Positions 4,693 to 31,534 of a DNA stretch of 64,000 nt are shown here, one piece after another. The stretch is from assembly GCF_000143415.4 (NCBI RefSeq), contig NW_003314363.1:1-64000 (forward strand). Reading direction: 5' to 3'. The translations under genes and the position numbers were made by a program. The notes below the pieces were generated by a model. The model was not told the DNA's origin and did no database searches. It worked only from the letters and a program-made list of their open reading frames with translations. The first letter of the stretch is position 1, and every line of letters begins with the position of its first letter. This stretch comes from Selaginella moellendorffii (lineage: Eukaryota; Plantae; Lycopodiophyta).

Positions 4693-5669
4693 CTCAATTT
4701 CTAAATGACTCATCTGGCCATGGGATCCCATAGTGAGTAATTTCATTTATAGAAGATCCATAACTTCAATTAATAATCAGAGTTTTAAATGTGATATAAT
4801 GATATGCGTTATATTTATTATGTTATGATGTGTGTTGGTGATAGAATCAATTGTAGAAGGGATTTTTAATATAAAGATATTATGTTTAGTTATGTATGTT
4901 ATCAATATGAATATGTTAAAAATTACAATTATGATTACAACTCTTTGAAAGTACTAAACCATCAGAAATAAACATGATGCTCCTAGCATAGCTGGGACTT
5001 TTGCTAGTAGCACTTCTAAATAAAAGCGATAAGATATTCCTCGTTTCTATGATGATGATGATGATATGAACTTTTCAAAATTACTAAACAACGGAAATGT
5101 ACACAACACTCCCAGTGAACACATATAGATTTCAGCAATTTCTTGAGAGAACATACTGGAGAAACCAGTAAGTTCTGTAAACTCAGTTCTACTAACTCAA
5201 ACAAAATGGTGTTTATTTCTTTCCCAGCTATTAATTTCCTTCCAAGTTATTAGAAGAGAATTTAGAAAACTTTATTGTGTCGGTTTTAGCTGTTAGCCAG
5301 CCACACGACTCAATCCATCTTCACAAACATCAAGCATCAGTAAGTGATCCACATCAATGAGAAAGAAAAGTGCCACAAAGATATCAGAGATAATAACAAA
5401 AAAAAATTTGTTCTATTGATTGTGAGCCATTAGCTTGCATGCCACAGCAGCTTGCAAAAATCATCACTGGATAGTTTACAGTGGTATAAAAGGGAAGATG
5501 CCTGTCTTACCTCACTTATTTGATTGAGAAAAACATGGCAAGATCAGATCACCCGAAAGAACACAAAACTTGAGGAGTTACCACGGCAAATTTCCAGAGC
5601 TTTCTCATGGAACCCAAGGAGAGCCTAGTTCACTTGTCTTGCAGTGGTCTTGTCTTGCAGTTCCATCCT

Positions 5670-7260: not shown

Positions 7261-7354
7261 AGAATATAGAATAACGAAATGGTGCAGCATGTGCAATATA
7301 TATGATAAACCATAGGGAAATAGCACCCCGTAAGAACAGGAAAAATGCGATCAC

Positions 7355-7360
7355 AGAGAC

Positions 7361-7400
<40 letters not shown>
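7355..7400. repeat. (GA)n microsatellite
   Basis: AGAGACAGAGACAGAG followed by an (AG)n run. Confidence 0.95.
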
Positions 7401-7401
<1 letters not shown>

Positions 7402-8699
7402 ATGCACCTGTCCAACTGATTACAGTGCAAGAATTTATCACAACCAAGCCACCACAATCGTTGCAAACGTGAAACCTCATAGCCACCTTGTAACAATCTT
7501 CACCATTGCTTTGGAGCATCATAAATTTAATCCATCAGATTGGGAGCATCCACCATAAGTAAAATTGAATATTCTTAAATTGGAATATGTGACACTGATT
7601 CAAACAACTGCCTAGATTAAAACATGTGGCAAAAGGGTTGAATGATTCCTGTGACGTTTAAATTTTTTAGGGCGAGCCTGTAGTCTCTCACCGAGTTTAT
7701 TCTTCTTTTCAGTGCCAAGAAACAACCAAGTTGGCCTCAGATGAGACTTTTGACCAATGCTTTTGGCTATTGCGACTTGTGCTGGAACTAATGGTATGTG
7801 GGCAAATCTGCAAATCCTTTCTTATTTTTTGTGGCATTCATGCATCCCTTTGGCCTTGATGTTGGTACTCCCCGTCCTATTCAAAAGTGGCATTGTGAGA
7901 TTTGCAAATCCTCTCTAACTCTTCCAAGAGAATTTGTATTCTTCTTTTGATTGCAGTAACTACAGTTTCATGTGCTGTAGTTTCAAGACCACACTTGCTT
8001 TGGATCATCACCATAAAATTGGAGGACTGCCTCGGCACTTTATGGCTGCTGGGAGTGACTGGTTTAGCAGCCAGCCTACTGCGTCCTTTCAAGTATGTTA
8101 ATGAAGCTATGAATTCTTGGATATCTATTTTTCTCTAGCAGTGGCTGTTTAAGCTCTTCCAGTTTTTTTAACAAGATTCCACCACAACCAAAAGCTCCAA
8201 AGATATCAAGAGCATTGTCTATGGAGGATTGGAAGTGAATCTCATGAGTCTAGCAACCCAGAGCTGGCTCGTAAGTATGTCTTTCATATCTTTTCTTTGT
8301 TTATCCTTCTCGATTGATTCTATAATTTTGTCCTTGTGTTTTTTAAGCCTGGCAAAGTTGACCATGGGATTGATCATGCACTATTGTAAGCTTGCTTAAA
8401 ACTCCAATTTGTAAACTTCAGTGACTTGGTTCTTCCAGATTAGATTGGGAGGTTTTACCAGAGCGCATAGATTAAGCTTTGAGCTTGAGAGGGGTGGTCA
8501 AGCTTTTTTGAAAGTCTAGAGAGCCCAGGCCAGAGTGACTTAGATTGTGTCGTTGCGGGTAAATTTAGGACGAAAGGACTTTGTGTCCTCCCTCATTCCC
8601 ACTCCAAGTTAGCGAGAGAAAATGCCAAATATTTCAAACCTTGCACTAGAACAAATACTAAATTTTCTTACTAGATACTCCCTTATCTATTTAAATAAT

Positions 8700-11539: not shown

Positions 11540-11971
11540 CTCTTTAGCGCATAGCTGAAACTTTAAATCAAAGGTCCTCACTTTTATTTCCCTTTATATA
11601 AGTTTTCTAGAGCACAAGGTGGGTAGTCTCTCTTGCCAACTGACTCTTCAGTGGCCGAGCGAGACGATGATGAGCATCTCTGAGCAACTGGAGCGCGGAA
11701 GAAACTCGTCATGTGAAACATCTTCTAAGTGGAGGAATTCAAGGAGTTATGGGACAACGCCCACATTGCAATGATAACAATCTCATGTAGGACTTACAAG
11801 GTCCATCCTAGGGACTCTTTGTAAAATTTGGTCATGATAGAAAGCGTGTTTCAGTCAATGTCTTAGCTTTATAACTTGTTGATTGTCTATTCAGGAATAT
11901 ACCAAAACCTGATTGGGCGGGTTGGCAGCGAAGAAACGAGAGACCACGCGAAAGCGGCTAGACTTTGTCTT

Positions 11972-14900
11972 ATGGACTTGCTCCCAGATCTGGATCTATT
12001 TGATACTTCCACTGAACAGGTTTCCTTGGTTCAAGATAAAAAAACCGCCTATTGTTCTCTTTACAGCGGAGAGATGCTGGACTCACAAAAGAAGATGTTG
12101 AGAGATGTATTGTAGATGAAAATGTCGGTGAACTAGACCGTTTGAAGATGTTCCTTTCACCGACAGCTCATCAGGTTTACCCTCCCTAGAAGTGGTGAAA
12201 GGTTGTTGGAAATTTTGCTGCAGCTTCAACAAAGCTGCGCAGTAGCTAAGCTTCCGACAACGTTCCAAGAGTACGGACTACGTGCATATCACGCTCTGAT
12301 TCCCACGATCAACAGTTCCCTGGAGCGGTTCAATGCACAAATGCAAGTGAGTGCTCTAATGATATCTTTGATGCATTGATCGGGCTGAGACACTGTAGGT
12401 CGCAGTAGGAGAGGCGGTGAATAGGATTATTCAAAATGGCACGTTTACAAAAGATGTATGCTCTGCCAGTTCCTCAAACATTCGTCTAAAAACCCATCAC
12501 AGGTAGTGGGAAGACTCCTGCCTATAATAATGACTATGCTGACGTCAACTCGGCCAGATGCTGTTGTGTACGCTTGGCTTGAGGCTCTTTGCTCGTTAGT
12601 GCCTTTTCTACCTCGAAAGGTAGTGTGGAAAAGGTTTCACCATTTTAGACATTTCGTTTTGACAGGTCCTCACTGAAAGTTTGCTAAAATTGGCTCTATC
12701 TAAAGGACAGCCTGACGAGTCGTCGCAGACAAAAATTCTTTGTGCTCGAATATATGGCTCAACCGCACCTTCCTTAGAAGGAAAATATGTCGAACAAACT
12801 TTCCTACAAAAAGCCATGGCACTTTGTCAGGTTTGAAATAGCAGACCAAACGGTAGGGGTACCTCCAGAGCACACTGCCTACTGTGTGCAGGATACGGAT
12901 TCAGAGGTTCGGGTCTGCATGTGTCGACAGCTCTATCCATTGTCACGGACGGTTGGATTGGACACAGCCGAGGTATGTTCGTTGAGCCATTGTATTAAGG
13001 AAGCTACATTTATCTTCTCTGCAGAGGGTCGTGCTGCCAGAGCTTTGTGAACTCCTAAGAGATGAGGAAATTCCTGTCCAACATGCATCACTTAAATGTC
13101 TATTAGAAATGCTGAGCATGTTCCCGCCAGAGACCAAACAGTTGAAGATCTTTCCAATCATTCGTTCGTGCGCACAGCATTTTCATTTCTGGTGTTTGCA
13201 GTTTATTTGTAGCTAGATGCAGGTTTTGTGTGCAGCGGGAATCGGAAATGCTTCTGTCTTTGCTGCCGTTTCTTGGAGAAATCCTGGTGAAGGTGCGACA
13301 CCATCAACATAAAAATCTGCTAAAATAAGAGTTGCAGATGGGACCAGAATTGAAAGAGGAGGATGTGCAGGTTCTTGTGGACTCGTTCAGGTTATTTTGT
13401 AGTCACGAAGATGAGAACATAAGACGAGTAAGCTTAAGTTTCTAAAGCGCGTACGTCTGTATTGACGAAGTTGTCTCCTTTAAGCTCTGTGCATACAATT
13501 TCCCAGCCGTGATGAAGTGCATGGGCCCACGAAAGCATGTGTGGGGATTGCAAGCAATGTATTTGCACCTCTTTCAAGATCCAATGCCCAGAGTTCGCGC
13601 TTCAATCGCGGCATCCTTTCACGAGGTTGAGTTTGTCATGTCTGGTTTTGATTTTGTTTCGACTACCAATTTAGATTACGAAAATGCTGGGAAAGGACAA
13701 GACATCTTTGTATCTGAAGGAACCGTTGATTCTTTTGCTTAAAGATACGTCACGAGAGGTACAAGGGTCCCTGCTACCAATTCTCCAGCATGTTTTAGGT
13801 GAGTAGAAAGATAAAGAGTTTCGTAATTTTTTATGATGCAGGGATATATTGGTTCTTAACAGGGCAGTTCTCAAGTTCGGGTGAGCACCAAAGATTGGCA
13901 ACATATGGTGCAATTATTCCATACTTGTTGCAGATGGAAAAGGCTATTAGTAGCACCCACCAGTGGCGTTTACAACTTGATCTTCTTAATGCGTTTCCTC
14001 AGCTGCCTGTCGGACTTTCGCTGGAGAATTATTTCTAGCTACTGAATCTCATATTGCTTCTGCAGGACTATGTTTCCAGCGACCAAATCTTTGAGTACTT
14101 CGTACCTATTTGCTTTAGATATATGTCGGACGGGGCGTTGCCAGTTAGATCAGCGGCAACGCTATCTCTTGCAATATTTATACGGTGTGTTTTGTTGCAT
14201 GCACAAGAATCCTTGCTCACTAGTTCTTTCTGCAGCCATAATAAACGAACATCCCAGCGTTATGACTTATCACAAAGAGTGATAAAAGACTTCGCAAATG
14301 GGCAAAGCTACTGGTCGCGTTTGGTGTTTATAGAGTTTTGCGAAAGCATGTTGAAGTTCGTCTGCTGTGCTTAAGCCTTGTCATGCGTCATGAAGCTCGG
14401 GGTTTTGCAGGACATCAAGCTCACAAATGTTCAAAGAACACTTTCTTGAATCAGCAATAGTTGTCCTACAGGTCTGCTCTATGATAAACGTGGAACATGG
14501 ATTTATCTCTCGGTACAGGATGCCGTGGCCAGTGTTCGCATGCGAGCGTGCCTACTCATACCTCTGTTAAAAGCAGCCATCAAGCTTCCAGATGATGTCC
14601 AGGCACTAGAGCGAATAAACTTTTTTGCAACACAACGGCTTAATGACAACGATCGCCATGTTGCATCCGTCGCTCGTAGCATTGCGGACTGCCTGAAGCA
14701 CGCGAACATCAGGCTCCCCGGAAACGAGAAGTTCTCGCAGGTGCGGAACACCCTAATAACTCCGTGAATTCATGAACGTAGACGCGCAGGCCGAATTTGA
14801 AGCCATTGACAAGCAAAAGGAAGAAGAGGAGTGGAACATGCTGAGCAAGGAAGAACAAGTAAATTTTTGTTTTATATTTGTATCATTGTGTAGTTGTTTT

Positions 14901-15226
14901 GGCAGGATGAGAAGAGGAAGTTGGATGATGTACTTCATAGGATGAAGCTGGAACCTCACAAAAGGACCGGACATGCCACCGGTACGTCCACGGCGCGAAT
15001 GCCCTCCAAAGTCACTGGCAGTCCCAGTGTCAAAGTAAAAGCTGCTGCACCTGGAGTGTTGAGCTCGGGCGGCAAGCAGAAATCTCCTCCTGCTGCCACC
15101 GCTCCTGGCTCGGTCAAAGCGCCCAACTCAGCGAGACTAGAGTCGGAATCCGAGTCGAGTGACGTCTCCTCTCTACCACAAGCGCGGCCTCAAAGCAAGG
15201 CCAAAGCTGGGGTAAGGAGAAGCTGA
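11972..15226 (+). CDS. PPP4R4: Protein phosphatase 4 regulatory subunit 4-like HEAT-repeat protein (multi-exon)
   Basis: LTKEDVERCIVDENVGELDR, AMALCQDTDSEVRVCMCRQL, VVLPELCELLRDEE, LCAYNFPAV, RVRASIAASFHE and QWRLQLDLL resemble animal PPP4R4 motifs; many short GT-AG introns. Confidence 0.75.
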
Positions 15227-15325
15227 AAATCGAACGGTCATAATACTATCATGACCGTTGACTATTTAGTAGCTTACTAGCTAAGCCTAAACCGGTGCGC
15301 CTCTAGCTAGGGTTATGCGACTGCA

Positions 15326-15565
15326 ATGATTCAGTGGAAACGAACGCTTCGTAAAGTGCCTGGCATTAGAGGCCTAGCAAGTAGAGTGGGAGGAGACGCT
15401 ATAAATCATCCAAGTGCTTCTTCCAGCTCGGAGGACAGTGCCCTGCAAAGAGCTTGGGATGCTGTGGTTGACACCTGGAACTTCATTACCCGGAAGGCTA
15501 GGTATGCATTGCGGGGAGGGAGATTTCTTGTGAGCGGCGGGCGGCTTTTGAGAGGATTCTTCTAG
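15326..15565 (+). other. 79-aa upstream ORF ending ~60 nt before the F-box start (candidate uORF/small protein)
   Basis: ATG-initiated ORF just after a telo-box-like CTAGGGTT at ~15307. No homology recognised. Confidence 0.3.
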
Positions 15566-15624
15566 GAGCGACACAAATGGCCTGTGTGTTTCCTCCTTTC
15601 TTTCATCATCATTGATGAAGAGCT

Positions 15625-17568
15625 ATGGGAGACGCGTCGGATCCCTTTGACAAGCTTCCAGATGAGGTCTACCAGCTCATCTTCCACGCGATCTGTGACT
15701 GCAAAAGCCTGGTACGCTGCATGGCAGTTTCCAGAGCATTCAAAGAACAATCCGAGCGTGTCTCGACCCTCTGCATCGTTTGCCCGGGCCAATTCACATC
15801 TTATGTTGATAAGCTGCAGCGGATTTTCATGATGGTGAGACGATTCCACAGCTTGGAAGCTCTCGTTGTTAGAGTTGGGCAACCGAAAGACGAGCCTCCC
15901 TCGTGGGCGAGGTGCATGAGATATGCAGAAATTGGATCGTCCGTGGAGAAGTTTATCTTCATGGCGGCCAAAATTGGCGAGTTTTCGGAGTTTGATTCAG
16001 CCTTGCGGGGTCACCCTGTTCACAGAAAAGAGCGGGAGAGCTCGTCAGAAGGCGAAGGTGAGGCCGTTAGGATGGACAGAGACAGCGTGACGAGCGGCGG
16101 GAACAGCTCGACAACTCGCAGTCCTTTGGACGAGGAGGAAAAGGAAGATGAGGATTGCTCTTGGCCGTTGTCTGACGAGCAGATTTATCCGCAGTTGATC
16201 CTGAGGCAGGTTGTGGCTCCCAGCAACGACGTGCTGAAGAGGATGGTGCCCGTTATAGTATTTGCTATTGTGCAAGGACTGGATGAGTTTCGTGATTCAG
16301 TGCCAGCATTTATTCACAAGTTTAAGAAGCTCAAAATGTTTCTACTTGTGGACATGCTAGAAAGTGTGACGGTTCTCATGCGCGAACACCAGATTCAGCA
16401 AATTAGAATACGGCAGCAACAAATGGACGACAGTAAGGACGTAAAAGGCAAGAGTGTGAATGCGGGTGAGGAGTGTAGCAGCGACTTGATGCAGAAAGGA
16501 AAGGAGTGGCTTGAAAGCGACGAAAACAGAGGTTGCAGCTCACGCCGTAAACAAGATCAAGGGGAGAGCTCAGGAAGCCAAGGAAATTATGAGGACGAAG
16601 ACGATAACGAGGAGGAGCTGAGTCACAGTTCCGAGGGCTGTGCCACGACCCTGGAAGGAGGAGATAACCAGAGGACTCCCTTTGACGGCGCATCGGAGAC
16701 GTGGAGAAACTGCAAAGGGATTTGCATTCATGGACCGGGCGATAGCAGGGGCGAGCTCGCTTTCAAGTATCCATTTAAGCGAACTGGTAGAGGGACCAGA
16801 GGCAACAAGTCTGTTCGAACTGGGAGCTACCGTAGGCGAGAACGCAGTGCAGAATGGATGGATGAAAGCGTGAGGAGGCGGCAAGAAAACAGACACTACA
16901 AAGGGCTCAGTTTAAGGAGGAGAGAAGAAAGCAGAGCGTTCAAGACGTGGAAGCTTGGGAAAAGAGAGCGAGAAAATGGTGACGGCGACGGGAGTTACAG
17001 CGCTCAAAGTGTACTGGAGTCTTCCTGTGCATCGTCTTCTTCCCACGCTGACAGTGGAAGCTACGCTTCTGGAGAGACTTCGGACGGGGTTAGCGCTTCC
17101 TTGGATCATCCTTTAGCGTCTTCATGTCCTGCCGAAGGGGCGACGCCGGATTATCACATGGGAGAGAGGTTATCACACGGGAACATGGAGGCATGGAGTG
17201 AAACGTGGAAGGAGAGACTAGGACGCAGAGCTCGTGAGCTTCCGAGGGAGATGGGGGGCAATGAGAGTGCTACGGATGTCGGCAGGGAAGCCTTGAGACG
17301 TGAGAGGCTACGGGAGGGCGTTCGGAAGAGGCAAATGGAAATTGAAAGAGAAGCGCTGAGGTTTGATATCACGTTCTGGAGAGCTGATGAGGTTGTTGCT
17401 CGCAGCAACTACAGCCTCACGGACGTTTCAATGTGCATTGCAACACATGACGCTAGCCCACTGTCCATCTCCGAATTGAGGACTCTAGTGTGCTCAGCCC
17501 TTGCTGGCCCGCTCCTAGCCGCCACCATTGCTCATGTAAATGAACAAGCAAGTTTCCATAACTTGTAA
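15625..17568 (+). CDS. Intronless F-box protein (AUF1/At5g46170-like N-terminus) with long low-complexity insertion
   Basis: N-terminal DPFDKLPDEVYQLIFHAICDCKSLVRCMAVSRAF F-box; 647-aa ORF. Confidence 0.8.
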   Translation: MGDASDPFDKLPDEVYQLIFHAICDCKSLVRCMAVSRAFKEQSERVSTLCIVCPGQFTSYVDKLQRIFMMVRRFHSLEALVVRVGQPKDEPPSWARCMRYAEIGSSVEKFIFMAAKIGEFSEFDSALRGHPVHRKERESSSEGEGEAVRMDRDSVTSGGNSSTTRSPLDEEEKEDEDCSWPLSDEQIYPQLILRQVVAPSNDVLKRMVPVIVFAIVQGLDEFRDSVPAFIHKFKKLKMFLLVDMLESVTVLMREHQIQQIRIRQQQMDDSKDVKGKSVNAGEECSSDLMQKGKEWLESDENRGCSSRRKQDQGESSGSQGNYEDEDDNEEELSHSSEGCATTLEGGDNQRTPFDGASETWRNCKGICIHGPGDSRGELAFKYPFKRTGRGTRGNKSVRTGSYRRRERSAEWMDESVRRRQENRHYKGLSLRRREESRAFKTWKLGKRERENGDGDGSYSAQSVLESSCASSSSHADSGSYASGETSDGVSASLDHPLASSCPAEGATPDYHMGERLSHGNMEAWSETWKERLGRRARELPREMGGNESATDVGREALRRERLREGVRKRQMEIEREALRFDITFWRADEVVARSNYSLTDVSMCIATHDASPLSISELRTLVCSALAGPLLAATIAHVNEQASFHNL

Positions 17569-17622
17569 TACTTTAAAAATCTGTCCTCAAAAATGAAATG
17601 ATAAACACGTGAGGACCTACGT

Positions 17623-19144
17623 TCAGCTGCCATAGTAAACGTAGCCGCTGCTGTATTGTGATCCGTAAGCACTGGGACTGTAGCTCATTCCCGACGCGTA
17701 CAGGGTGTTTTGAGTTGTATAACTGTAGTCGGAGGTGGTGCAAGTGGTTGCTGCAGTTGTTCCTGCAGCTCCTGCCATGAAATTCTAGAGAAGAGAAAGC
17801 ACGAGAGGCGTGGAATCTCAGTGACAACCTCAACGAACCTGAAGCAACTGTTGTGCTGTTTGAACTTGAGTCGACTGCCCGTGCACTTCGATTGTCATCT
17901 CTCCTGGGGCATTGGGAGTCTCTTGTATGCTAATGGTTGCTCCACTTGTCCGCCGCATGTAGTTGATATTGGCCCCGGCAGTTCCAATGATTGCATCTGC
18001 GTACAAGAGGGGGACCTGGAGCTGCTGACTCACAGACTACGATTGAACAAAAGGCTTTGTGAGCAAGCGAAAGCTATAAGTTGTTTACCTCAGCAGGTGG
18101 TGCTGGCGTGGTGCTTGTTACATCCACCCGACCAGGATCACCACCATACATGGAGACAGCATAATGTTGGCTTTGCGCCTGATCCGCATAGTAGTCGGTT
18201 GACGAGTAAGGTGTGGTAGCAGCGACTGTGGGGGTAGCCCATGAAGTAGCAATAGCAGCAGCTTGCTGTCCTTGTACTTGGCTCGACATAGCGCGCTGTA
18301 ATTCACCGTTATGAACTTTGTATCCAATGGATCTGGATCCAGCAAAACTCACATTGAACTCAAACAGCTGGAGCACGGATCGGTCCACGAGAAACTTGCG
18401 CAAATGAGAGACCACAAGCTCCATGGCTTTCTGCACCTTCAAGATTTCGCCTTGGACTTCCACCATCCTGTCGTCCGCTAACGCACAAAGTGGGAGCTCC
18501 TCTGAGACAACAAGGGTTAACAGCACGTAGCACAAAAGGGCACGAACCAACTGGCATGATTCGGACTGTAGCACCCGAGGTCTCCTGTATGGACCTGATT
18601 GTCGCACCTTGTCTTCCAATCAGGCTACCAGCTTGTGTAGCGGTGACGAGAAGGCGAGACTGAACGAGGCCCGAGGGCAAAATGATGTGCTCAACAGGTT
18701 CACCATCGCCACTGGAGCCCTCTGTAACTCGCCGATGGACCCGGAGTAGGCCGTCCATTGCGGGTGAGATAGTTGCTTCGGGATCCTCCTTGGCAGAAAC
18801 GAGCACCTGCACAAGTTGCATTGCATGGCTGGATGCCAAAACTTGCAAAGGCTACGTACGATGCGCTCTAGCGTTCCTGGTACACCGTCGAGAATTTTGA
18901 TGCGCGACCTTGTTTCCTCGCACATTCTCTTGACGAACTCGCCCTTGCGCCCAATAATTGCACCAACCTTGTGAAGAGGGACAATGAGCCTAAAGACATT
19001 ATCCCCTGGCCAGCCGGGCCATTTTCTCTCTCCCGGGGGCGTTTCCTCCTGGGAGCCAGCGACGGTGCTTGGTAGAGTTACACTGGCAGGGTCCTCTAAG
19101 TGTAGGAGGTCGACCGGCTCTCCGATAATCACCGAGCACGCCAT
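17623..19144 (-). CDS. FLK: Triple-KH RNA-binding protein, FLK/PEPPER-like
   Basis: [38 protein letters not shown]; [11 protein letters not shown]; [23 protein letters not shown]. Confidence 0.85.
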
Positions 19145-19347
19145 TCAGGCGCTCTAGCGAACTCGACAAGAGGAAATGGGAAGAAGTGGCAAACCATGAA
19201 CAGTGCTATGCCGCCGGAGGCGCTCCATACTTTGCCCTCAAAACCTGGAGCACACACAACTAACTTGTGCCACGCGAATATTCCCAGATCTTCATGTGTT
19301 TTTTAAAAGAGACAATATCCACACCAGACAAGTCAGGACATGCCGGA

Positions 19348-21036
19348 TCAGATGCCCAACCGGCAGTTGAGGTACCACAGATGCCATGCCAGCCCCACCA
19401 GCATTGCAAGATTTGCAGCAGAGCTGCAGAAGTGCAGCGCCCGGACCCTTGTCATCACGTCCCCCAGCTGCGTCCTCCTGGCGTGATCGTCCACACCACT
19501 TCCTCCTCCTCGTTCTCCAGGGCCGGGATCCAAAGCTCTGCCTTCCTCCTTCTCTATCCGTACTTTGTCAAACACACACTGCAGAAACAAGGACAGGCTT
19601 AGCGCACAATTTGCAACAGTGGAGGCGCCCACCTTTGTCAGCCGTGGTTCCAGCAGGAAAGTGTTGAGCAGTGTCACAACCAGGCACCCCGCAAGGTTGT
19701 AGCACTGCAGCAGCTCCGACAGGTGGGCACCTGGCGGCGAGTGCAGCAGTATGTGCGTTGCAAGGAGAAGAGCAATCCCCGACCCAACAATCCTGAAGTA
19801 GACGGGGAAAATCTTACTCTGCACCAGGGCGAACTGGTGGCGGGATATGTTGTTGGAGAGCACGAATCCAGAGATGAAAGTCACCCACAGTGCACTGCCA
19901 AACGTGGACGAGAAGAGGAACAAGTGCATCAGGCGAACGAAGGTGGCCACCGACTTATGGACCCACTGCTTGCAAATCCGGAGTGCCATCTCTTCAGACT
20001 GGTTGAGCTTGGCCATCTTATCGTGAGCCCATGCACCGGCCTGATTCCACGTTCGATTCACCTTCTCCCGCGCGCTGTTGCCCCACCTTGCCGCTTCTTC
20101 TTCAGCCTCGTGCACTTTGAGACAGAGCTTGTTCTTCTCGTCCACAACGGCGTCCTTGCCGCTCTGTATTGTGCTCATGCCGTAGTTGAAGACTGCCTCC
20201 CGTCCAGCATTGAGCTTGAGCCTCACCACGTCGACAATGTGTCCCAACTTCTCCTTTTGGTTTTCCAAGCTTTCCAAGGACGCCTGCTTGGCCTTGTCAT
20301 AGTAGGCCTCAACTCGACGCTTGGAGGAATCGAGCGACCTTCCCAGCTGCTGCTCCTTGTTGCTGAGCGCGTCGAGCACAGCGGCCTTGGTCACGTCGTA
20401 GTAGTCGCGAACCTTTCCCCTTGCCATTTCCAGGCTGGGATGCTCTTCGTGCGGCTCTAGCTCTGGAAGTTGGTTCCGGAGAAGCCCAAGCCCTTCTGTT
20501 GCTTTGTCCATTGCATCTCTGGCCGAGCTCCTTGCACCTTCGAGGTAGTCCTCCAACTTCTTGAGGTCTTGGTCCTCCGGCGTACCGTGGGAGGCGTCGT
20601 AGAAGCCAATGCCTTGGCCCAAGTTGGGCTGGTAGTGCGCAGCCTCCTGAACCCTCTCCGTGACAGCTCTCGCCAGCTTACTGCCCAGAGATTGCTGCTC
20701 CTCAACGGCTTGATGTGCTACATCGCCGGCGGAGCTCAAGGACTCGCCGAGCCTGTCTCGTGCACTGGCCGCTGACTCTGCGCCTCTGCTTGCGCCCTCG
20801 CTCACATAATCCGACAGCCTGTCCCGAGCCTCTGAAGCTGCGTCTTGGCCGCGCTTGGCCGCAGACAAGAGCTTGCCACTGTAATCCTCCTCCGCGAGTT
20901 TGTTGGTGGCCGAGACGCTATGGGCCTCCACAACAATCACGTCCTTGTTCATCTTGCGCACCGTAGGCTCCGGGGACAGAAACATGACGGCACCCAGAGA
21001 CGAGAGTAACACACACAAGGCTCTAACATTCATCAT
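19348..21036 (-). CDS. LEA-like helical protein with C-terminal TMEM205/DUF4149 membrane domain
   Basis: Signal-like N-terminus, amphipathic A/E/K/R-rich repeats, then HLFLFSSTFGSALWVTFISGFVL...RHQFALVQSKIFPVYF. Contains a small in-frame intron at ~19580-19630. Confidence 0.8.
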   Translation of the reverse strand: MMNVRALCVLLSSLGAVMFLSPEPTVRKMNKDVIVVEAHSVSATNKLAEEDYSGKLLSAAKRGQDAASEARDRLSDYVSEGASRGAESAASARDRLGESLSSAGDVAHQAVEEQQSLGSKLARAVTERVQEAAHYQPNLGQGIGFYDASHGTPEDQDLKKLEDYLEGARSSARDAMDKATEGLGLLRNQLPELEPHEEHPSLEMARGKVRDYYDVTKAAVLDALSNKEQQLGRSLDSSKRRVEAYYDKAKQASLESLENQKEKLGHIVDVVRLKLNAGREAVFNYGMSTIQSGKDAVVDEKNKLCLKVHEAEEEAARWGNSAREKVNRTWNQAGAWAHDKMAKLNQSEEMALRICKQWVHKSVATFVRLMHLFLFSSTFGSALWVTFISGFVLSNNISRHQFALVQSKIFPVYFRIVGSGIALLLATHILLHSPPGAHLSELLQCYNLAGCLVVTLLNTFLLEPRLTKVGASTVANCALSLSLFLQCVFDKVRIEKEEGRALDPGPGERGGGSGVDDHARRTQLGDVMTRVRALHFCSSAANLAMLVGLAWHLWYLNCRLGI

Positions 21037-21189
21037 GGCTACACACTATACCTCTTATCTCTTTTGTTGGACGACGACAACGACGACGCCGATGCCTGCC
21101 TGGGTCTTGTTCTTCTTGTTCTTGTTCTTGCTCGACCTAGAACAAAGTAGTAGAACCCCGCGCTGCTTGTGCGTGACAAGTGGCATAGG

Positions 21190-21196
21190 ACGTGGC
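21190..21196. promoter_or_regulatory. ABRE-like element (ACGTGGC) upstream of the LEA-like gene
   Basis: ACGTGGC lies ~150 bp upstream of the LEA ATG, in the divergent LEA/MYB intergenic region. Confidence 0.35.
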
Positions 21197-21501
21197 AACA
21201 GGAGAAGTGGCTACAGCCTTTGTTTTCCTTTATTATAGAAACAAGGGGCAAAAAGGAAAAGGCAAGAAAGGTGGTATTCACAATTATAATATATTTTCCC
21301 CTTTCCAGCTCAACGAACACCTCCATGTATTTAGCCCCAAGTTAGCGGAATTGAGTCAAGCAGCAGATCTCGCTGTGCCGCGACCAAACGCCCTCCCTCG
21401 CTTCAATTGCCCATTGCCGCCGCCTCCTAATCCCCTCCTCCTCCGGTGCTCGATGCTGCGACAGGTCAATTGTGTTGCAGCCGCGGCAGATTGTGTCAAG
21501 G

Positions 21502-22871
21502 ATGGGCCGCCACTCGTGTTGCCAGAAGCAGAAGCTCAAGAAAGGATTGTGGTCGCCAGAGGAGGATGAGAAGCTGGTGAGGTACATTACCAAGTATGGC
21601 CACGGCTGCTGGAGTGCGGTGCCAAAGCAAGCAGGTGCTCTTGTGAAACTGGAGAGAGAGAGAGAAAGAGAGAGGCATTGACAAAATCTGGTTTCATGGT
21701 GGCTTGGCTTCCAGGGCTTCAGCGATGCGGGAAGAGCTGCCGGCTGAGATGGATCAACTACCTCAGGCCCGATCTGAAGCGAGGTGTCTTCTCCGCAACC
21801 GAGGAGAAGCTCATCATTGAGCTCCATGCTGTCCTCGGTAACAGGTGGTGCACCTTTCTCTTCCTAGTATGCATGCATATATGCCAATTCGTTGCTCATT
21901 ACGAGCGTTGCCACAGATGGTCTCAAATCGCCACACAGTTGCCCGGGAGAACAGACAACGAGATAAAAAACTACTGGAACACGTGCATCAAGAAGAAGCT
22001 CAAGCAAATTGGCATCGATCCCAACACGCACAGGCCGCTGGATGAAGCGGGGCTGGCGGTGGCATCTACAGGTTCCGCATCGCCAGCCGCAAGCATGGAC
22101 ATGAACGTGAGTGTCGAGTGTAATTTGCATCACAGAACGACGACCTTGTACCCTTGCGCGTTTGAGGACATTCTTTTCAACCCCACTTGCACTACTCGAT
22201 CCATTGGTGTTGGACGCCACCACCTGCTCAAGCTCCAAGCTCTCGAGGGAAGCAGCAGCAGCAGCAGCAGCAGTAGCAGCAGCAGCAGCAACATTCACTT
22301 GACGGATTCTCTGGTGGAGAAATTCCTGGCGAGTGGGCTTGATCACACCAGGCAGCCATCTGCATCTTCCTACAGCTGTTACGACTCTGCGCTCATTTCC
22401 TCGTCCTACGACAACGAGCTGCACATGTTGCAAGGGCATGGGCCGGGGGATCAACGCCAGCCAGACCCATGTCTCTTCTCCTTCCTTGCAGCGGCTGAGG
22501 AAGGATTTGGGATGGTCAGTAGCAGGGGGGGGCTGGCGTACTACGGCGACTCTTTCAACTCCGGGGAAGCAGTAGCTGCTGCAGCAGCAGGAGCTGGCAG
22601 CAACACGGCGAGCAGCAGTAGCGCTACAGCCACGGGGGGCGAGGAGGTGGAAGCGGATGAGCACAGTAATGTGGTCCAGTGGTGTGAGCTAATGCCGGTG
22701 TCGTTCGCGGTGCACGAGTTTGAAAAATGTCATGATCAGGAGGTGGCGTTGAAACAAGAGGATCCGGGGCAGAGCCTGTGCTGGTCACAGCAAGCTGCAA
22801 TGGGCATCGGCGTGGGCATGTGCATGTCTCCGGAACTGGAGCGGATTGCAGCGGTCATCGATGAGATGTAG
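21502..22871 (+). CDS. R2R3-MYB transcription factor (MYB61/MYB86-like), 3 exons
   Basis: [25 protein letters not shown]...[23 protein letters not shown]...[22 protein letters not shown]...[10 protein letters not shown]; poly-Ser (AGC)n ~22251-22290. Confidence 0.92.
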
Positions 22872-23246
22872 TCCCATCTCCTGTGGTGTGTGTCTGTGTG
22901 GGTGGTGTGTGCGTGTGTGTGTTTGTATTTTTGGTACCTAAAGTCTATAGAAAGTGTGACAATGATACGAGGAATGTTGACCTGGCCGCAGGAATAGGAT
23001 GTTGCCGTCCCTGACTGCAGCCCAACAAGCCAAATCCGCGAGAATGTTGGCATGATGGTGGCGCTAACAGAGGCGGGATCCTTGTTTGTTGCCGTGCAGT
23101 GGAATGGACGGATGGGGCAAGGACGTGACAAGCCCCTCTTTGTTGTTTCTTGTGTCGCGCCCAGCAAGCAAAACAATGCGAGGAGCGACTTCCTAAGCTC
23201 CCGACCTCGCTTGTTCCGTGCCTCACGCTTTGGGCAGGGCTGAATC

Positions 23247-26200
23247 ATGGCGACGCAACCTCGCAATGAGGCGCTGGAGCAGCGAATTGCGGCGGAGGTA
23301 ATCGCTCGCTTAGAAAATCCACGGCATGTAACAATCTCTCTTTCCGTGACGAATCCAATTCAGGGAAGCGAGCAAGCATATCATGCCATTGTCGTCCCAG
23401 CGTCAGATACGGGTGGTGCTGCTACCGGTAGAAGCCGTGTCCATCCACTTGCTTACATGGAAGGTAATGGCCGTTTCCTAGCCGCTGTGCGTCAAGGAGA
23501 CATGCGTGTCTATGTGGTGACAGAGGCACAGGCATCATATGGTTATGGTACCGTATCTTGGAAGAAGAGGTTGGAAGGCTGGAGGCTACGAAAAGAAAGA
23601 TATGAGATGATGACGGCTGAACCTTCTCATGCCAAAGCTGATGATGCCAGCGCCGAGAGCTTCTACTCACCAGACTTACCAGTGTATGCTTTACACTCCA
23701 ATTCTGTGGCTATCAGCAGCATTTGTTGCTACTTGCAGAATGGACCAGGCAAGGCAACCACTGTCGAGGAAGGTTCCTATTGCTTCGAGTTTGGTCAACC
23801 CTTACAGGATGGTCATTGTCATTCGGCTCGTAGCTCTGGCTTTCTACTTCCGCTTCCGCATTCTAAATCCAGTTGGCAATGCATATGGCTTGTGGCTGAC
23901 ATCAGTTGTGTGCGAGATTTGGTTCGCTCTCTCTTGGATAGCTCATCAACTTCCTAAATGGTTCCCAGTTGTAAGGGAGACATACCTTGACCGCCTTGCC
24001 CTCAGGTATGTGAGACGATATCAGAGGTTTTGCTACGACTGATTGATGATTAAAAGGTATGAGAAACAAGGGCAGGTGTGCGGCCTGCCCGCTATAGATG
24101 TCTTGGTTGCGACGGAGGACCCGTTTAAGGACCCTCTTCTGGCCACAGCCAACGCCGTCCTTTCCGTCCTCTCTGTTGATTACCCCGTCGAAAAGCTCTC
24201 GTGCTATGTCTCGGACGACAGCGCTGCCATGCTTACGTTTGAAGGCCTTTGCGAGACATCGGAATTTGCGAGAAAATGGGTGCCTTTCTGCAGGAGCTTT
24301 AACGTCGAGCCTCGTGCCCCCCAAGTCTATTTTGCCCAGAAGATTGACTATGCCGACACCAAGTTTCAATCGTCTTTCGTCAAGGAGAGGCGGGCAATGA
24401 AGGCATGCATGCTTTTTTTTTTTCATCTTTTGTTCTGGCTGAGTAATATTTCAGAGAGAGTACGAAGAGTTCAAAGTGAGAATCAATGCGTTGGTGGAGA
24501 AGGCTGCCAAAGTTCCTGAAGAAGGCTGGAGCATGCAAGATGGAACCCCATGGCCAGGAACCAACAGCCGAGACCATCCAGGCATGATACAGGTAATTAT
24601 TATTGGAAAGAGCAGTTGTCTAGTTAAACCTGTTCGCAAATGCACAGGTGTTTCTTGGTCACAGCGGGGGACACGACAGCGACGGCAATGAGCTACCACG
24701 TCTTGTGTACGTCTCCCGAGAGAGACGCCCCGGATTCAAGCATCACAACAAGGCGGGAGCAATGAATGCTTTGGTGAAACCAATGTTTAAACTGTTTAGA
24801 TCACTCACTGATCACGCCTTGCTCCGTAAACAGGTGCGTGTGTCCGCCGTCTTGACAAACGCCCCGTATGTTGTGGACGTCAACTGCGCTGATTATGTCA
24901 ACAACAGCCGCGCACTGCGTGAGGCAATGTGTCTTATGATGGACACAATGGTTGGGAAAAAGGCGTGCTTTGTGCAGTTTCCGCAGAGATTCGGCAGCCA
25001 TGACAATGAGCATGCTGTCTTCTTTGACGTGAGTTGGCGACCAGTTTCTCTTGTCTGGATTTCTGAGTTGCGCACGACTGTGTGGCAGATAAATCTCAAA
25101 GGCTTGGATGGTATCCAGGGTCCCATGTATGTCGGGAGGGGATGCGTTTTCCGGCGACAGGCACTGTACGGCGTGTGTGCACCTGTGAGCGGCAAAGCGC
25201 GGCAGCGCTTGCATTGCCGGGTGGGGGACGAAGAAGGTGCGTGCCATTTTGCAAGTTTTTAGCACCTTATACAAACATTTGGACGCAGGTGACGAAAAAA
25301 GGCTGGAGAAGCGTTACGGGCAGTCACCGGTGTTTGTGGCGTCAACGAGGCAAGAAGCAGTTCCTAGTAGCCCCAACGATGACGGTAGCCTGTCCAACGA
25401 TGACGGTAGCCTATCGACGTCGGCTCTTCTGAAAGAGGCAATTCACGTGATCAGCTGCGGCTACGAGGACAAGACCGAGTGGGGGAAAGAGGTAAAGAGA
25501 GATGAAAATTGCTGGGAAAAGGCCTGACGCTTGCTTGGTCACAGGTTGGTTGGATTTACGGGGGAGGCGATTGTGTGGCCGGCATGTTGATGCATGCCAG
25601 GGGCTGGCGCTCCACATACTGCATGCCTCAGCGACCAGCATTCAAGAGTTGTGGGCTGCTGGACGTGGCAGGGAAATTGGAACAATTGCTGGTGCAATCT
25701 ATGGCCAGCATGGAGCTTGTGTTGAGCAAGCACTGTCCACTGTGGTATGGCTATGGTGGTCGCCTCAAGCTGCTTCAGCGGCTGGCCTACCTCAGCAGCG
25801 CTTTCCATCCTCTCAACTCCATTCCACTCGTCGTCTATAGCACACTGCCTGCCGTGTGCCTCTTGACTGGCAAGTTCATCCTTCCCGAGGTACGTGTGTC
25901 ACGTTTGTGCCATTGTTTCATCCAACGCTCGCATGCAGTTGGGAAGGTCAGCCAGCCTGTTGCTCATGACAGTGCTCTTGTGCATTGGTGCAAGTGCCAT
26001 CCTAGAGATGCGGTGGAGTGGAGTGAGCGCGGAGGAATGGTGGCAAGATGAGCAGTTGTGGGTGATTGGAGGCGTCTCGTCGCACTTGGTTGCATTGTTC
26101 CAAGGCCTCGTCAAGGTTTTGGGTGGTGGTGACAGTTTCAGCTTTGAAGCCCCTCCCTGCGTTTGTATCTCAACCGGAACCGGATGGAGCAGCCTTCTCG

Positions 26201-26505
26201 TCCCTCCCTTGACAATTCTGGTGATCAATATGGTAGGGGTGGCAGCTGGGCTGTCAGATACACTCAATAACGGCTACGAGTCATGGGGGCCACTGCTTGG
26301 CAAACTTCTGTTTGCCTTTTGGGTGATCTCGCACCTCTACCCATTCCTTAAGGCTATCATGGCTAGGCACAACCGCACACCCACAATCGTCATCGTATGG
26401 TCCATTCTGTTAGCATCCATCTTCTCGCTTCTCTGGGTGCGAATTAACCCTTTCATTCCCAAGCTGGTTGGTCCCAGCTTGGAGGAGTGCGGCATTAACT
26501 GCTGA
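23247..26505 (+). CDS. CESA: Cellulose synthase (CesA)-like protein lacking the N-terminal RING/Zn finger and with degenerate catalytic motifs
   Basis: [89 protein letters not shown] and ...LWVRINPF...CGINC. Exon frames are open; one GC-AG intron at 24403-24454. Confidence 0.9.
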
Positions 26506-26866
26506 CGGCGCTGTTTGCATAAGGTTGGAGAAGCGTGGCTATGGTCTCTTCCTGTAGCTCCTCCTGTGAAGAAGAACAAACCAGAGGGCACCTCGAGCTG
26601 CCGGGGCGATGGATTGAACGGGCGCTCTAAGGTGCAATATTTGTGCATTTCGTACGGGTAGCAATAAGGACGATCTGTGTCCATCGTGGGGCCTCCTCAG
26701 CTTTGTCTCCCCGCCGCCGCCGCCGCCGCTTGTGTTACGGTATATCCAAGCGAGTGGTAACACCGGTAGCGTAGTAAGATTTTTGTGCGCAAGCCATGGC
26801 TTGAGACATTGGCGCAGCTTCAAGATGCCGCGGCATTGCAACCCTTTTACCCTAAAACTCCATGCA

Positions 26867-28815
26867 ATGGAGGGGGGCTCGGAGGAGTCATCAGAGTTGG
26901 CGCAGCCCCTGCAGCTCGGCTTGGATGGCGATGGAGGCGAGGTGGAGGACTGTTTTGGTCCTGCAACAGAGGTGGCGTGGCAACCGAATGCGGCGCTGTG
27001 CCGAAACTTTGACAAGGTACGTGGTGGTGCCCGAGGACTCTGCTTTGATATCCGGTGCAGTTGAAGCTCCTTTACATCCAGTCCACGCAGCTCAATTTAC
27101 GACTGCAAGTGACATGTGGAGTGCTGAGGAAAGAAAAGGTAAGGCGCTTTACCTCCTCTCATGCTCCCCGCTGTCTATAGGAAGAGATGCAGAAGAGATA
27201 CTTCGCTGCTGCGGGTTTTGGAAGCGAGAGCGACAGGTGTACAGTTGCTCATTCTGTTTAATTACCTCCATCTGTGTCGTGTGTCAAGGCGTCCAGAAGA
27301 TGCTGAAGTGCAAGCCAGTCCGTCGCCTTTGCGCACATGCACTCGCTGACGTTTATGTGTGTGCAGACGAGCGGAGGTTAACTCAACTTGAAGCATCCAA
27401 GAGAGCTCTCGAGGGGATGTAAGTCTCTTGCTCAATTGCTTCTCATCTCACTTTTTTGTGCTCCAGCAACGAGCCGGGAGGAATAGTAGGAGTCTGACCT
27501 GTATCCTATGCGCGCTGTGCTGTTAACACTAATGTCAATCATGGCAGTGTAAGCATTGCGACGGTAGAGTGTCCGTTATTTCCGGGCTGGAGCAAGCGGT
27601 GCAGCAGTTGAAGTAATATCGCCCCTCTTCTGGTGAAAGTCTCACTCGTTTTTCCAGGGACCGTTTACACACATTCGAAGTGAAACACGACAACGTCTCG
27701 CAAATGGGAAAGTAACTGTGACGCAATCACGGACCGGTTCTCACTTTGTGTGATACCAGGCAGGTGCAGGAAATGGAAGAGACCAGCGATGCGCTAGCCA
27801 GAGCTTGCCGTGAGGAGCAGAGGCAGAGGCAGATGTGTAAAGCCTTGGAAAGCGAAGTATGTGATCTTCGGGCTCTGCTTCGTGCCGTGGAGCAAACCAG
27901 TGCTGAAGCGGAACTCAGGCACCTGAACACAGTCAGTGCCCTCGTAAAGGTGGTGTACACACGTGGAGCCTGTCACCCTCTTTGACTGCCTGGAGGATGC
28001 AGGAGAAAGAGGGCCTACATGAGGAGGTTGAAAACTTCCAGCACAAATGTAATGTGCTAGATGCAAGCTTTGGCAAAGTGCAAGAGGAGCTTCTGGACGT
28101 GAGCACGAGGCTAGAGGAATCACGAGCCAAGCTGGGAGAAGCCGTCTGTAAGAATAACGACTCACAGGCCGAAGCAGCTAGCTACAGGTGGAGTTTTACT
28201 TGATTTGTTCCAATATTTCAACGTTTTAGAGCAGAGTTGAACGAGATGAACTCCAAAGAAAGCTAGATTCGGCGAGAGGAGACATGGCAGAGCTTGCGAA
28301 ATTCAGAGAACTGGATCATGTAAATACCGTGGAACAAGTGAAAGTACGTCTTGTGGCTCGGAGATGCCTTTTTAAAAAACTTACATGCAGAGAAGCTGCG
28401 AGTCGTCGTGGCGGACGCAAGAGAACTCTTCTCAACAGAGGATATCCTCTTTGCGCCGCAAGATACATCAGCTGCAAGCGGTAATCCTTGAGACAGAGTT
28501 GGTCTATTTTGCAACTCTGACATCAGGTGTTTGCAGAAAGTCAAGCAGTCACACAAGCAAATGGCGAGGCTAACTTTTGATAGGAACGAGCTCCTGATCC
28601 AGCAGCAGGAGTACGAAGCGCAACTAAGTGCATTGCGGCAGGTACCTTCTTGGCTACAAGTTCGCCTGCTGAAATGCTGCCATTGCAGCACTCCTTCCGC
28701 ATTCGAGCACCAGGCTTTCACCTCTCCTCACCCAAATCGAAACTTATCAGTGCGGAAATTAGTCAGGTTGCAGCACGTCAAGCTAGATACTTTGCCGATA
28801 CCGCGCTGTGAATAA
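26867..28815 (+). CDS. Multi-exon coiled-coil protein of unknown function
   Basis: Successive short GT-AG-bounded exons rich in E/Q/L/K heptads (e.g. QVQEMEETSDALARACREEQRQRQMCKALESEVCDLRALL). The 3' end is uncertain. Confidence 0.55.
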
Positions 28816-29019
28816 TGTCCAAGAGGGAGCAGGCCTTTTGTCTCTTACATGCAGATAGTGATTGCAGGTGGTAGCAGACAAGAATGTGTTTTCGATTGTT
28901 TCATAGAGTTGAGCTAGAGTCAAATTTTATCCATTGTTAGACTCGTGTATGCAAAGTTCCCGCCGCAAGCATTACAAAATACAGTTCTGAAAGAGAAAAG
29001 AGAAAAAGGCTGGCCTCCA

Positions 29020-31534
29020 CTATATGCTCCTATAATCAATCACTGTAACATCGTCTTCCGGCGCGTCAAGATCGTGATAGCTGCACGGCAGGGTTAGTTC
29101 AACAGAATTACGGAATGAGAAGAGAAACCTTCGCATGTGACGAGGGTCGTGCCTAACTGGAGGAACCATCTGCGGCGTCTCCAAAACACCCCGTCCCTTT
29201 CGTCCACGGTCACCACCATCAAATGAAGGATCAAATGGAGCGGGATGAAAAGGCTGCGGGCCGCCGCCGTGCTCTCTCCACATGCGCATGGTCACGTCAG
29301 GAGGAGCAGGGACAAATGGACCCAAGGGCCTGGCCACACAAGCTTGAGAAGGAGTGCACACGAAAACAAGGAAACACTCACCCCGCGCCAGGCACAGGCA
29401 TCAACACTGGAGGAGGTATTTCCGAACCAAATGCTCCCCCGTGAATGTTGGTCCCACCAAAAGGATCAAACATTGGCTGCTCCGATGACGCTGGTCCGGC
29501 CCCTTCATATGGATAATCTCCAGCCGGCGATTTATCCACGTCCTCGCCACGGCCTCGACTCCTATCCGAATTTCCCAACAGACCGGGCCTACGCCTGTGC
29601 AGCCTGCTGTCCCTCTGAAACAAATACCACCAGGTTACGGACGTCATCTAGGCGAGGCTTACCTGGTTCGCTTGCACGGAGGCCACGCCAGGAGCATTAG
29701 GATCACTGTTTGGACACGTTTGGACATTAAACTCGGCAACTCGAGCATGGACGACGTACCTCATGTAGTTTTGATAGTAGAGCTCTCTTCGGAGTTTGGC
29801 CATGGACTCGTTTACAATCTCAGGATGCTTCAGCTTGAGATGCTTGTGTACAAATTCTGGTCCATGGAAAAGCTTCGAGCACCCAGTAGCCAAGCACCCA
29901 TACTTCCATCCATACTTTTCGTCCCTTATTTTTCGTACGTAGGGTTCAAGCGCTTCTGACATAGACGCCTCCGACTTGTCCTTGCCAAGCATAGCTTCTA
30001 CGGGGTCCTGGCCCTGCAATCGTGCCTGCCATGTAGAGTCCAGCTTTTTTTCCCATTCAGCCCGTGCATTGTCATCGCCTGCCTTCTCCTCCCCTCTGAG
30101 GTGTCGAAACCCTTTCGGCAGCTCACGTAGCTCCATCATTCCGTAGTAATCCAAACCGTGGACTCTCCACAGGTACGTGAGCATTACGTCCAGCAGTTCG
30201 ATGCCTTCGAGACCCTTCACCTGGTTAGCCCCTCGAACTATAACAATAGGACCACCGGTTTCACTGCTCAAGTTCTGTTGCTCAGAAGAAAAGAGGATGT
30301 TTCCTTCTACACCCTTTTCAGTGTCCAGCTTTTTAACCAGCGCCTGCGCCTGTTCTATATCTATGGCCACCCTCTTTAAATCCGAGGAAGCGTGTTGTGC
30401 TCGTGGGATAGTATCCGCCTGACGGCCCCCCATTCTCTTGTCGTCGTCCGTTTCAACATCTGCGGTGGATCTGCTACCAGCAGCAGCAGCAGCAGCCGCC
30501 GTCCTACACCAAGCAATGTCAGATACGAACGGGAACACCTCACCCGACTCACATGTCCAAACTTCCAGCCTGCAGCTCCAAAATAAAGTCCCGTGCACTA
30601 GACTTCGCAGTTTCAATCCTCCTGCAACCACAAGCGCACACGTCAACAATAACTCTAGATTCCTGAGATCATACCGAACCTAGCCATAAGGGAGTCCAGC
30701 CGCGACGGATCGTACTTCTCCCGTAGCCTGGACCCGACGAAATTTGTGAAACGGATAACAATTGACAAGTCACGCGACTTCGTACCAGTCTTCCTCCTTG
30801 TGCTGCTCGAAATAGGCTCGCTTCTGAGTGGAGACGTATTCCGCTTTGTATTCCTCATACCTGCACAGCTAAAAGGTGAGAAGCTGCTACGGAAGCGAGG
30901 CAAAGACCTGCGCTCGGCTTCAGCGGGAAGAATGTCGTCCTCTAGCTCCACGATAAACTGCTTGTAAGACAAGAGTCCGTCCCTGCGCGCAGCGCACGAT
31001 TAGAAAAAAAGGAGCGGCAGAGTTGGGCGAGGGAGAAACCTGCGAGGGTAGGCATCACCATACATGCTTCGCCCGGACCACTCTGGAAAAACAAAAGGTG
31101 ACTGAGCATGTGGAAAGGAAAGGGGAGTATGAGAGCCCACCATTAGAACGATGGCGGCCGTAGTCACCACCATAGCCTCTACCAAGAATACCATCCCTGG
31201 AGAAATGAGGCAAGCTGAGTAGCGCAAGAGCGGAAAGAAAAGGTCAAGTGAGTTACCTTCCGCCCTCATAACCTCCCCGGTCGTCATCCCGTCGAGAGCG
31301 CTTGTGGGCGGCAGGAGACCTGCGGGAGGGCGAATGGCGTCGATCCCGGTGAGGCAAGGGAGGCGGGGACAGGCTCTTGCGGCGCTTGTTGTGCTTGTCG
31401 TGACGGCTTGCCTGCCTGCTCTCATCCTCACCTCGCCTCTTGCTGTCACCTGCGTCGTCGGCAGCTCCCCCTTTGCGCCGCTCCGCGGTGTCCCTGGGGA
31501 GTGGCTCCGGAGGCAGATCCATGACATCCGCCAT
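29020..31534 (-). CDS. SE: SERRATE / Ars2 homolog
   Basis: SYKQFIVELEDDILPAEAERR; GLEGIELLDVMLTYLWRVHGLDYYG; IRDEKYGWKYGC..GCSKLFHGPEFVHKHLKLKH; C-terminal DLDAPEDDVTVIDYRSI. Confidence 0.95.

Follow-up and report, generated by a model that had tools for sequence, protein, structure and literature searches.

Can a cellulose synthase (CesA) gene that has lost its active site be kept by selection, and if so, what for? This question is raised by a gene of the lycophyte Selaginella moellendorffii at positions 23247-26505 (+) of the window analysed here, the first 64,000 nucleotides of contig NW_003314363.1 (assembly GCF_000143415.4), which corresponds to GL377667.1, positions 1-64000, of GCA_000143415.2. 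To our knowledge, catalysis is assumed for all CESAs in models of the cellulose synthase complex, and the usual count for Selaginella is four. A disabled yet constrained and expressed fifth copy would be a natural case in which to learn whether a dead subunit can sit in the complex or regulate it, in a plant made tractable by its few CESAs, and would parallel a still unexplained clade of grass proteins, CESA10/11. An earlier note, made from the letters of the window, had described the gene as intact in frame but catalytically disabled, and had proposed a maintained pseudoenzyme. Our analysis favours, with a probability of about 0.72, an expressed, selectively maintained, non-catalytic CesA paralogue, very likely the one catalogued as SmCESA5.

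The case for a disabled enzyme was built residue by residue, by comparison with solved CesA structures and with Pfam PF03552, which matches exons 5-12 in order from position 24058 (profile positions 1-718 of 722, E-values 1e-13 to 4e-65). The DCDH motif is replaced by NCAD (24882-24893), QVLRW by QLLVQ (25683-25697), and SVTED by GGGD (25560-25571), the latter with a deletion of two amino acids that leaves the remaining D aligned under the D of TED. The gating loop FTVTSK reads FSFEAP (26137-26154), and the loop that follows it is shortened. Milder changes affect STVDP, now ATEDP (24109-24123) with its D retained, DDG, now DDS (24214-24222) with DD retained, and HHKKAG, now HHNKAG (24741-24758), and six residues are deleted from the DRYANRN stretch (24993-25013). 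The signatures of processive family 2 glycosyltransferases, namely D, DxD, D(TED), QxxRW and FxVTxK, do not hold in this protein, where DDS, NCA(D), GGGD, QLLVQ and FSFEAP stand in their places. By replacement, DxD has lost both aspartates, QxxRW its Arg and Trp, the gating loop its Lys and the uracil groove its Ser and Val.

The roles of these residues are known from poplar CesA8, where Ser and Val of STVDP form the uracil groove, DxD binds Mg2+ and QxxRW binds the diphosphate through its Arg (PMC9934533). The R717A mutant of this enzyme is inactive, only V853L and T854S among its tested gating-loop substitutions keep about 30% of the activity, and the gating-loop Lys of the bacterial BcsA is replaceable by neither Ala nor Arg (PMC9934533). 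Because the residues that contact UDP-glucose, Mg2+ and the acceptor are all replaced, we strongly infer from the sequence that this CesA copy has lost glucan synthesis. The motif replacements listed in the earlier note, together with the shortened DRYANRN stretch, were each borne out by the alignment to solved structures, and its description of a disabled enzyme agrees with the residues lost.

Two further losses lie outside the active site. The N-terminus of the dead CesA consists of 103 amino acids without a Cys-rich motif or a Pfam match. Two codons 5′ of the ATG (23247) stands an in-frame TGA, the MYB gene on the upstream side extends to 22871, and the whole 64-kb window showed neither coding potential nor homology of a RING-like kind. 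The class-specific region comprises 28 amino acids, against 75-94 in canonical CesAs. The missing RING finger and the short class-specific region, both remarked upon before, are therefore real features of the locus. The C-terminus, by contrast with these losses, is the usual CGINC (26488-26502).

A protein of this kind might still be an enzyme with another arrangement of donor and metal, or a channel that binds or translocates glucan beside an active CesA. In favour of this, an Asp is kept at the TED position (GGGD), DDG retains its DD and STVDP its D, the channel-forming membrane helices are in place, and selection does preserve something. We nevertheless regard such an altered chemistry as unlikely, since the DxD aspartates, the QxxRW Arg and Trp, the gating-loop Val, Thr and Lys and the uracil-groove Ser and Val are replaced, the TED loop is shorter, and several of these changes, taken singly, abolish the activity of CesA8 or BcsA (PMC9934533). 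Moreover, the same modules were lost independently in the grass clade of OsCESA11, which looks like relaxed catalysis and not like a new active site.

The non-catalytic paralogue that we favour should be transcribed, spliced and constrained. Reads and contigs of four runs (Logan contigs, the run types being mostly guessed as RNA) were aligned to positions 22600-27000, and they support a gene of 12 exons (2646 nt) with a product of 881 amino acids. The initial model, drawn from the sequence only, had 10 exons separated by introns of 49-60 nt; the RNA-supported model has two more introns, 23298-23363 and 23464-23523, which lie inside the former exon 1 (23247-23683) and have been removed in contigs of run X9, a run only presumed to be RNA. 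Reads or contigs confirm the joints 23683>23739, 24005>24057, 24592>24648, 24773>24834, 25028>25089 and 25236>25289. Intron 5 (24403-24454) is of the GC-AG type, its GC donor is kept in both alleles, and it is predicted to be spliced; the intron before exon 11 was placed from the frame and GT..AG only. The 5′ untranslated region (UTR) reaches at least back to 23099, with no read depth at 22894-23040. The annotated products, of 871 amino acids (23457-26505) and, for the other allele, 844, disagree with each other and with our models of 881 and 874 amino acids. Exons 1-2 are absent from the annotation, which runs on through intron 2, and the GC-AG intron may be a further source of annotation error. 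The view that exon frames and splice sites are intact thus held for both alleles, with the model itself corrected to 12 exons and one GC-AG intron.

The contigs of run X9 carry a different organism label (organism B) yet match the locus without any difference. Either the species is the same and only the label differs, or the run includes Selaginella moellendorffii material.

Spliced sense transcripts, which had been named as a check on the proposal, are present at a low level, in runs of which some are only presumed to be RNA. Per 9.2 million reads, 11-14 are near-identical to the gene, or about 0.5 reads per kilobase per million (RPKM), on the sense strand of raw RNA-seq runs, and the RNA level is about 1% of that of the canonical paralogues, as judged from cross-mapping read piles. 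Three such piles (24453-24489, 25456-25491 and 26053-26088) were considered as expression of the gene itself and rejected, as their loose ends encode the canonical IGWIYGSVTE and so come from paralogues. So low a level of RNA argues for a sub-stoichiometric or cell-type-restricted role, and not for a bulk subunit.

The evidence for constraint comes from a second haplotype, on GL377576.1, which is 97.6% identical over 22872-26900. Both alleles are open (881 and 874 amino acids), with an unchanged start codon and every one of the 22 splice dinucleotides in place, the GC donor included. Their exons differ by 22 substitutions, 13 synonymous and 9 nonsynonymous, which gives a synonymous divergence (pS) of 0.0215, a nonsynonymous divergence (pN) of 0.0045 and a pN/pS of 0.21 (binomial P=3e-4 under neutrality). 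Divergence is 0.83% in the exons, 1.5% in the introns (9 substitutions in 613 nt) and about 2.9% in the flanks. A single indel separates the two coding sequences, an in-frame deletion of 21 nt: a tandem 21-nt repeat at 25375-25416, in the class-specific region, encodes NDDGSLS twice, and GL377576.1 has one copy. None of the nine amino-acid replacements restores a motif. The coding variants that appear in reads or contigs and are not due to cross-mapping (24093, 25332, 25338, 25814, 25840, 26004 and 26155) all match the second haplotype, and therefore the runs, part of which are only presumed to be RNA, contain both alleles. Selection has acted against amino-acid differences between the two alleles.

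A simulation of neutral point substitutions bears on the age of the catalytic decay. Fewer than 5% of frames survive at 0.03 substitutions per site, and none of 2000 at 0.1, whereas the 46% residue change seen at motif positions needs about 0.3 substitutions per site. The motif decay thus requires some ten times the divergence that an open frame survives, and would therefore long predate any fully neutral phase. The idea of maintenance, as opposed to random decay, gains from the intact alleles, the pN/pS of 0.21 and the enrichment of losses in motifs, and it stands as far as evidence from within the species carries it. Within the species, the combination of absent expression and a ratio of nonsynonymous to synonymous change near 1 was not found: transcripts are present and the allelic pN/pS is 0.21. 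In comparisons with seed-plant CesAs, synonymous sites would be saturated.

How far the rest of the protein has been preserved was judged against 19 canonical CesAs, three CslDs and seven grass ‘dead’ CesAs. Among 463 core columns invariant in canonical CesAs, 114 (25%) are replaced in the Selaginella protein, at a frequency of 45% in motif windows and 20% elsewhere (odds ratio (OR) 3.2, P=1e-5). The windows comprise residues at most three positions away from eight literature-defined motifs, a set picked after the finding, so that the P value is generous. Invariant sites are kept at 87% (73 of 84) in the plant-conserved region (P-CR), at 85% in transmembrane helices (TM) 1-2 and at 61% in the C-terminal part of the glycosyltransferase domain and the interface helices, which makes the P-CR and the membrane helices the best-kept parts. 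In the tree, the CesA clade that includes the Selaginella protein is split from the three CslD representatives with a support of 100, in agreement with the CesA membership that a phylogeny had been expected to check; the protein falls at the base of CesA without a resolved position, in a taxon set without SmCESA1-4. Its stem branch measures 1.12 substitutions per site, against 0.02-0.44 in canonical CesAs. Judged from these alignments, loss is concentrated at the active site, yet the whole protein is accelerated. The earlier description of a well-conserved scaffold holds in relative terms and is overstated for the protein as a whole, given the long branch and the replacements outside the motifs.

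The gene is very likely SmCESA5 (JGI 235890, XP_002989886), listed in the catalogue of Harholt et al. 2012 (PMC3342304); the earlier note had allowed for an entry in glycosyltransferase catalogues. A neighbouring open reading frame matches SELMODRAFT_428422 (XP_002989961) at 97% identity, its locus, GL377667.1 9348-31036, is identical to the same positions of the window, and the neighbour's allele, XP_002968913, lies on the second haplotype. The accession of this neighbour is 75 numbers away from XP_002989886, and no other divergent CesA copy was encountered in this analysis.

The gene could alternatively be a transcribed, unprocessed pseudogene whose frame has not yet been broken and whose RNA is noise or is degraded, so that no functional protein results. 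The low expression, the introns retained in some contigs and the accelerated stem would all suit a pseudogene, as would the treatment of the gene in the literature: the tree of Harholt et al. does not include SmCESA5, these authors note that earlier CESA/CSL counts contained two pseudogenes (PMC3342304), and later work counts only four Selaginella CESAs (PMC13016765). We hold this to be quite unlikely, given that both alleles keep a frame of 874-881 codons with its start codon and splice dinucleotides and with a sole, in-frame indel, that the exons diverge less than introns and flanks and show the low allelic pN/pS, and that the catalytic decay exceeds about tenfold the neutral divergence which an open frame of such length survives.

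A selectively maintained, non-catalytic CesA thus remains the preferred reading, and a possible mode of action may be outlined. The protein most likely folds like a CesA and probably makes no glucan itself. It would act through protein contacts with the four canonical SmCESAs, possibly as a sub-stoichiometric structural or regulatory partner in the assembly, trafficking or activity of cellulose synthase complexes. The fold and the contact role are suggested by the fact that the P-CR and the membrane helices are best kept; the P-CR forms trimer contacts in CesA trimer structures. If such a role is real, it bears on how the number of chains in a microfibril and the trafficking of the complexes are tuned.

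Several observations weigh against this proposal. Expression is very low, at about 0.5 RPKM, and introns are retained in some contigs. The selection test consists of 22 substitutions in one haplotype pair from one heterozygous plant, and the equation with SmCESA5 is drawn from the catalogue and from nearby accession numbers, as opposed to matched sequences. Competence for folding and assembly is an assumption, and 20% of the invariant positions outside the motifs are also replaced. The lost RING finger and class-specific region are, in addition, thought to help oligomerisation. Finally, point mutations of QxxRW in Arabidopsis CESA6 impair folding or rosette formation (PMC10291031), a result that speaks against a ready entry into complexes.

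The features of the gene are collected below.

Table 1. Transcribed features of the non-catalytic CesA gene, in positions of the 64,000-nucleotide window, with the evidence for each.
Feature	Positions	Strand	Evidence
5′ UTR (minimum extent)	23099..23246	+	X9 contig unbroken 23099-23295
Exon 1, ATG at 23247	23247..23297	+	GT..AG joint 23295>23362 (cut +2) in X9 contig
Exon 2	23364..23463	+	Joints 23295>23362 and 23461>23522 in X9 contigs
Exon 3, conserved N-terminal CesA segment	23524..23683	+	X9 contig 23522-23683; joint 23683>23739
Exon 4, TM1-TM2 region	23739..24005	+	3′ joint 24003>24055 in 3 raw reads of run X22 and in X4 contig
Exon 5, ATEDP, DDS, P-CR start, GC donor end	24057..24402	+	PDB alignment; Pfam positions 1-103
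Exon 6, P-CR	24455..24592	+	X4 contig 24453-24588, joined to 24644
Exon 7, HHNKAG at 24741-24758	24648..24773	+	Joints 24588>24644 and 24772>24833; Pfam
Exon 8, NCAD and DRYANRN-stretch deletion	24834..25028	+	PDB alignment; joints 24772>24833 and 25028>25089
Exon 9, YVGRGC, ALYG, class-specific region start	25089..25236	+	3′ joint 25234>25287 in X22 and X9
Exon 10, remaining class-specific region, 21-nt tandem repeat	25289..25491	+	Haplotype comparison
Exon 11, GGGD and QLLVQ	25545..25889	+	PDB alignment; loose X4 contig end at 25937 fits the following splice
Exon 12, TM helices, FSFEAP, CGINC and stop 26488-26505	25939..26505	+	PDB alignment; Pfam positions 535-718

The surroundings of the gene are the same in both haplotypes, where positions 11600-31036 hold genes for a HEAT/PIK3R4-like protein, a KH-domain protein, a TMEM205/DUF4149 protein, a MYB factor, the dead CesA, a protein of 425 amino acids without a Pfam hit, and SERRATE/ARS2. 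The R2R3-MYB gene (21502-22871, +) ends about 230 nt 5′ of the mapped start of the dead-CesA transcript. Myb domains are recorded for its product from the other haplotype (429 amino acids) and none for that from this one (405 amino acids), which suggests a model error. A CDC48-type AAA ATPase is encoded at about 34.9-37.2 kb of the window. The first 8000 nucleotides of the window (1-8000) are AT-rich, with a GC content of 0.24-0.37 against about 0.53 elsewhere, and contain only short, low-copy tandem repeats; this start of the scaffold may be a repeat- or transposon-derived end.

In a word search with exon 12, no protein of 103-329 amino acids exceeded 66% identity; the gene's own product falls outside this length window. 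The closest exon 12 fragment was rejected as Selaginella sequence: it belongs to a canonical CesA with a RING finger, and its metagenome contig stems from a different plant. A related DNA run, X15, contains 12% of the gene's words. Exon 11, compared with all 50% representatives, reached 59% at best; the gene's own product is not a representative in that set, so that the absence of an orthologue is not claimed. Over 863 aligned residues, the Selaginella protein is 59% identical to a Citrus CesA.

Canonical CESAs (poplar CesA8, 6WLB; cotton CesA7, 7D5K; soybean, 8VHT/8VI0/8VHZ; SmCESA1-4) are the first system with which the gene can be compared, and they have the same PF03552 architecture. As in these proteins, a P-CR, seven membrane helices and a C-terminal CGINC are present, and at least one intron position is common to the Selaginella gene and a canonical paralogue. 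Unlike them, the protein has no RING finger and a class-specific region of 28 amino acids, its DxD, TED loop, QxxRW and FxVTxK are replaced, its branch is several times longer, and its RNA stands at about 1%. A CesA2-like isoform of Magnolia (XP_058076290.1, isoform X4) has DCNH, TSD and QVLRS for DCDH, TED and QVLRW; its N-terminus holds a long insert of repeats, part of the protein is missing, and it may represent another degenerate CesA or a mis-prediction.

A second comparison is offered by engineered mutants of Arabidopsis CESA6 with changes in DDG, DxD, TED or QxxRW, which still enter the secretory pathway and affect the trafficking, motility or assembly of the complex (PMC10291031). They indicate that a dead CESA can influence complexes. 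These mutants are, unlike the Selaginella gene, single laboratory substitutions in a full-length, RING-bearing protein, mostly deleterious, and not naturally maintained paralogues.

A grass-specific, uncharacterised CESA clade (BdCESA10, OsCESA11, Sb10g023430) offers the closest parallel; every grass genome has it, and its members possess neither the zinc finger nor the complete D,D,D,QxxRW set (PMC3847494). OsCESA11 (Q69XK5, ‘putative cellulose synthase A catalytic subunit 11’, about 860 amino acids), which surfaced in the search of representative proteins, and the Selaginella protein are both RING-less, with the TED loop deleted and without QxxRW, and their gating loops read FSTETT and FSFEAP, respectively. 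Low expression is another common trait, OsCESA11 being the one OsCESA that is not highly expressed (PMC3022907). The grass proteins, unlike that of Selaginella, keep DCDH and a full-length class-specific region (73 amino acids), and the identity between OsCESA11 and the Selaginella protein is 51%. In a local test of a search limited to part of OsCESA11, canonical CesAs would rank ahead of the Selaginella protein. In Eragrostis and Eleusine, the annotation joins a gene of the OsCESA11 type to a bZIP (HY5-like) protein, in what are probably merged models of adjacent genes.

It is highly unlikely that the two form one ancient non-catalytic lineage of vascular-plant CesAs, as one tree that joins them (SH-like approximate likelihood-ratio test, SH-aLRT, 86), the shared RING loss, TED-loop deletion and FS.E gating loop and the overlap of replaced sites might suggest, because the joining tree is flagged as long-branch attraction, the grass clade nests in monocot CesA1 with a support of 95 without Selaginella and likewise of 95, in another taxon set, with it, three-way site counts reveal no special affinity (68 vs 70), and among the best 120 matches of OsCESA11 the clade appears only in Poaceae (65-92%), followed by canonical CesA1 at 54%. 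The invariant sites lost by Selaginella and by the grass clade overlap strongly (OR 5.7, P=1e-13), which fits a relaxation of the same catalytic modules in both lineages.

Non-catalytic, RING-less CesAs would then have arisen independently at least twice, losing the same modules and being kept afterwards, and complexes would recurrently recruit a dead subunit; we put this forward tentatively, as a rather doubtful generalisation. If true, dead subunits that regulate assembly, trafficking or chain number would make up a general kind of complex component that has gone unrecognised so far. In the library that was searched, no paper links cellulose synthase with pseudoenzymes of this sort. As judged from trees and site patterns, the dead CesAs of Selaginella and of grasses are of independent origin, and the Selaginella gene resembles the OsCESA11 clade without being a member of it.

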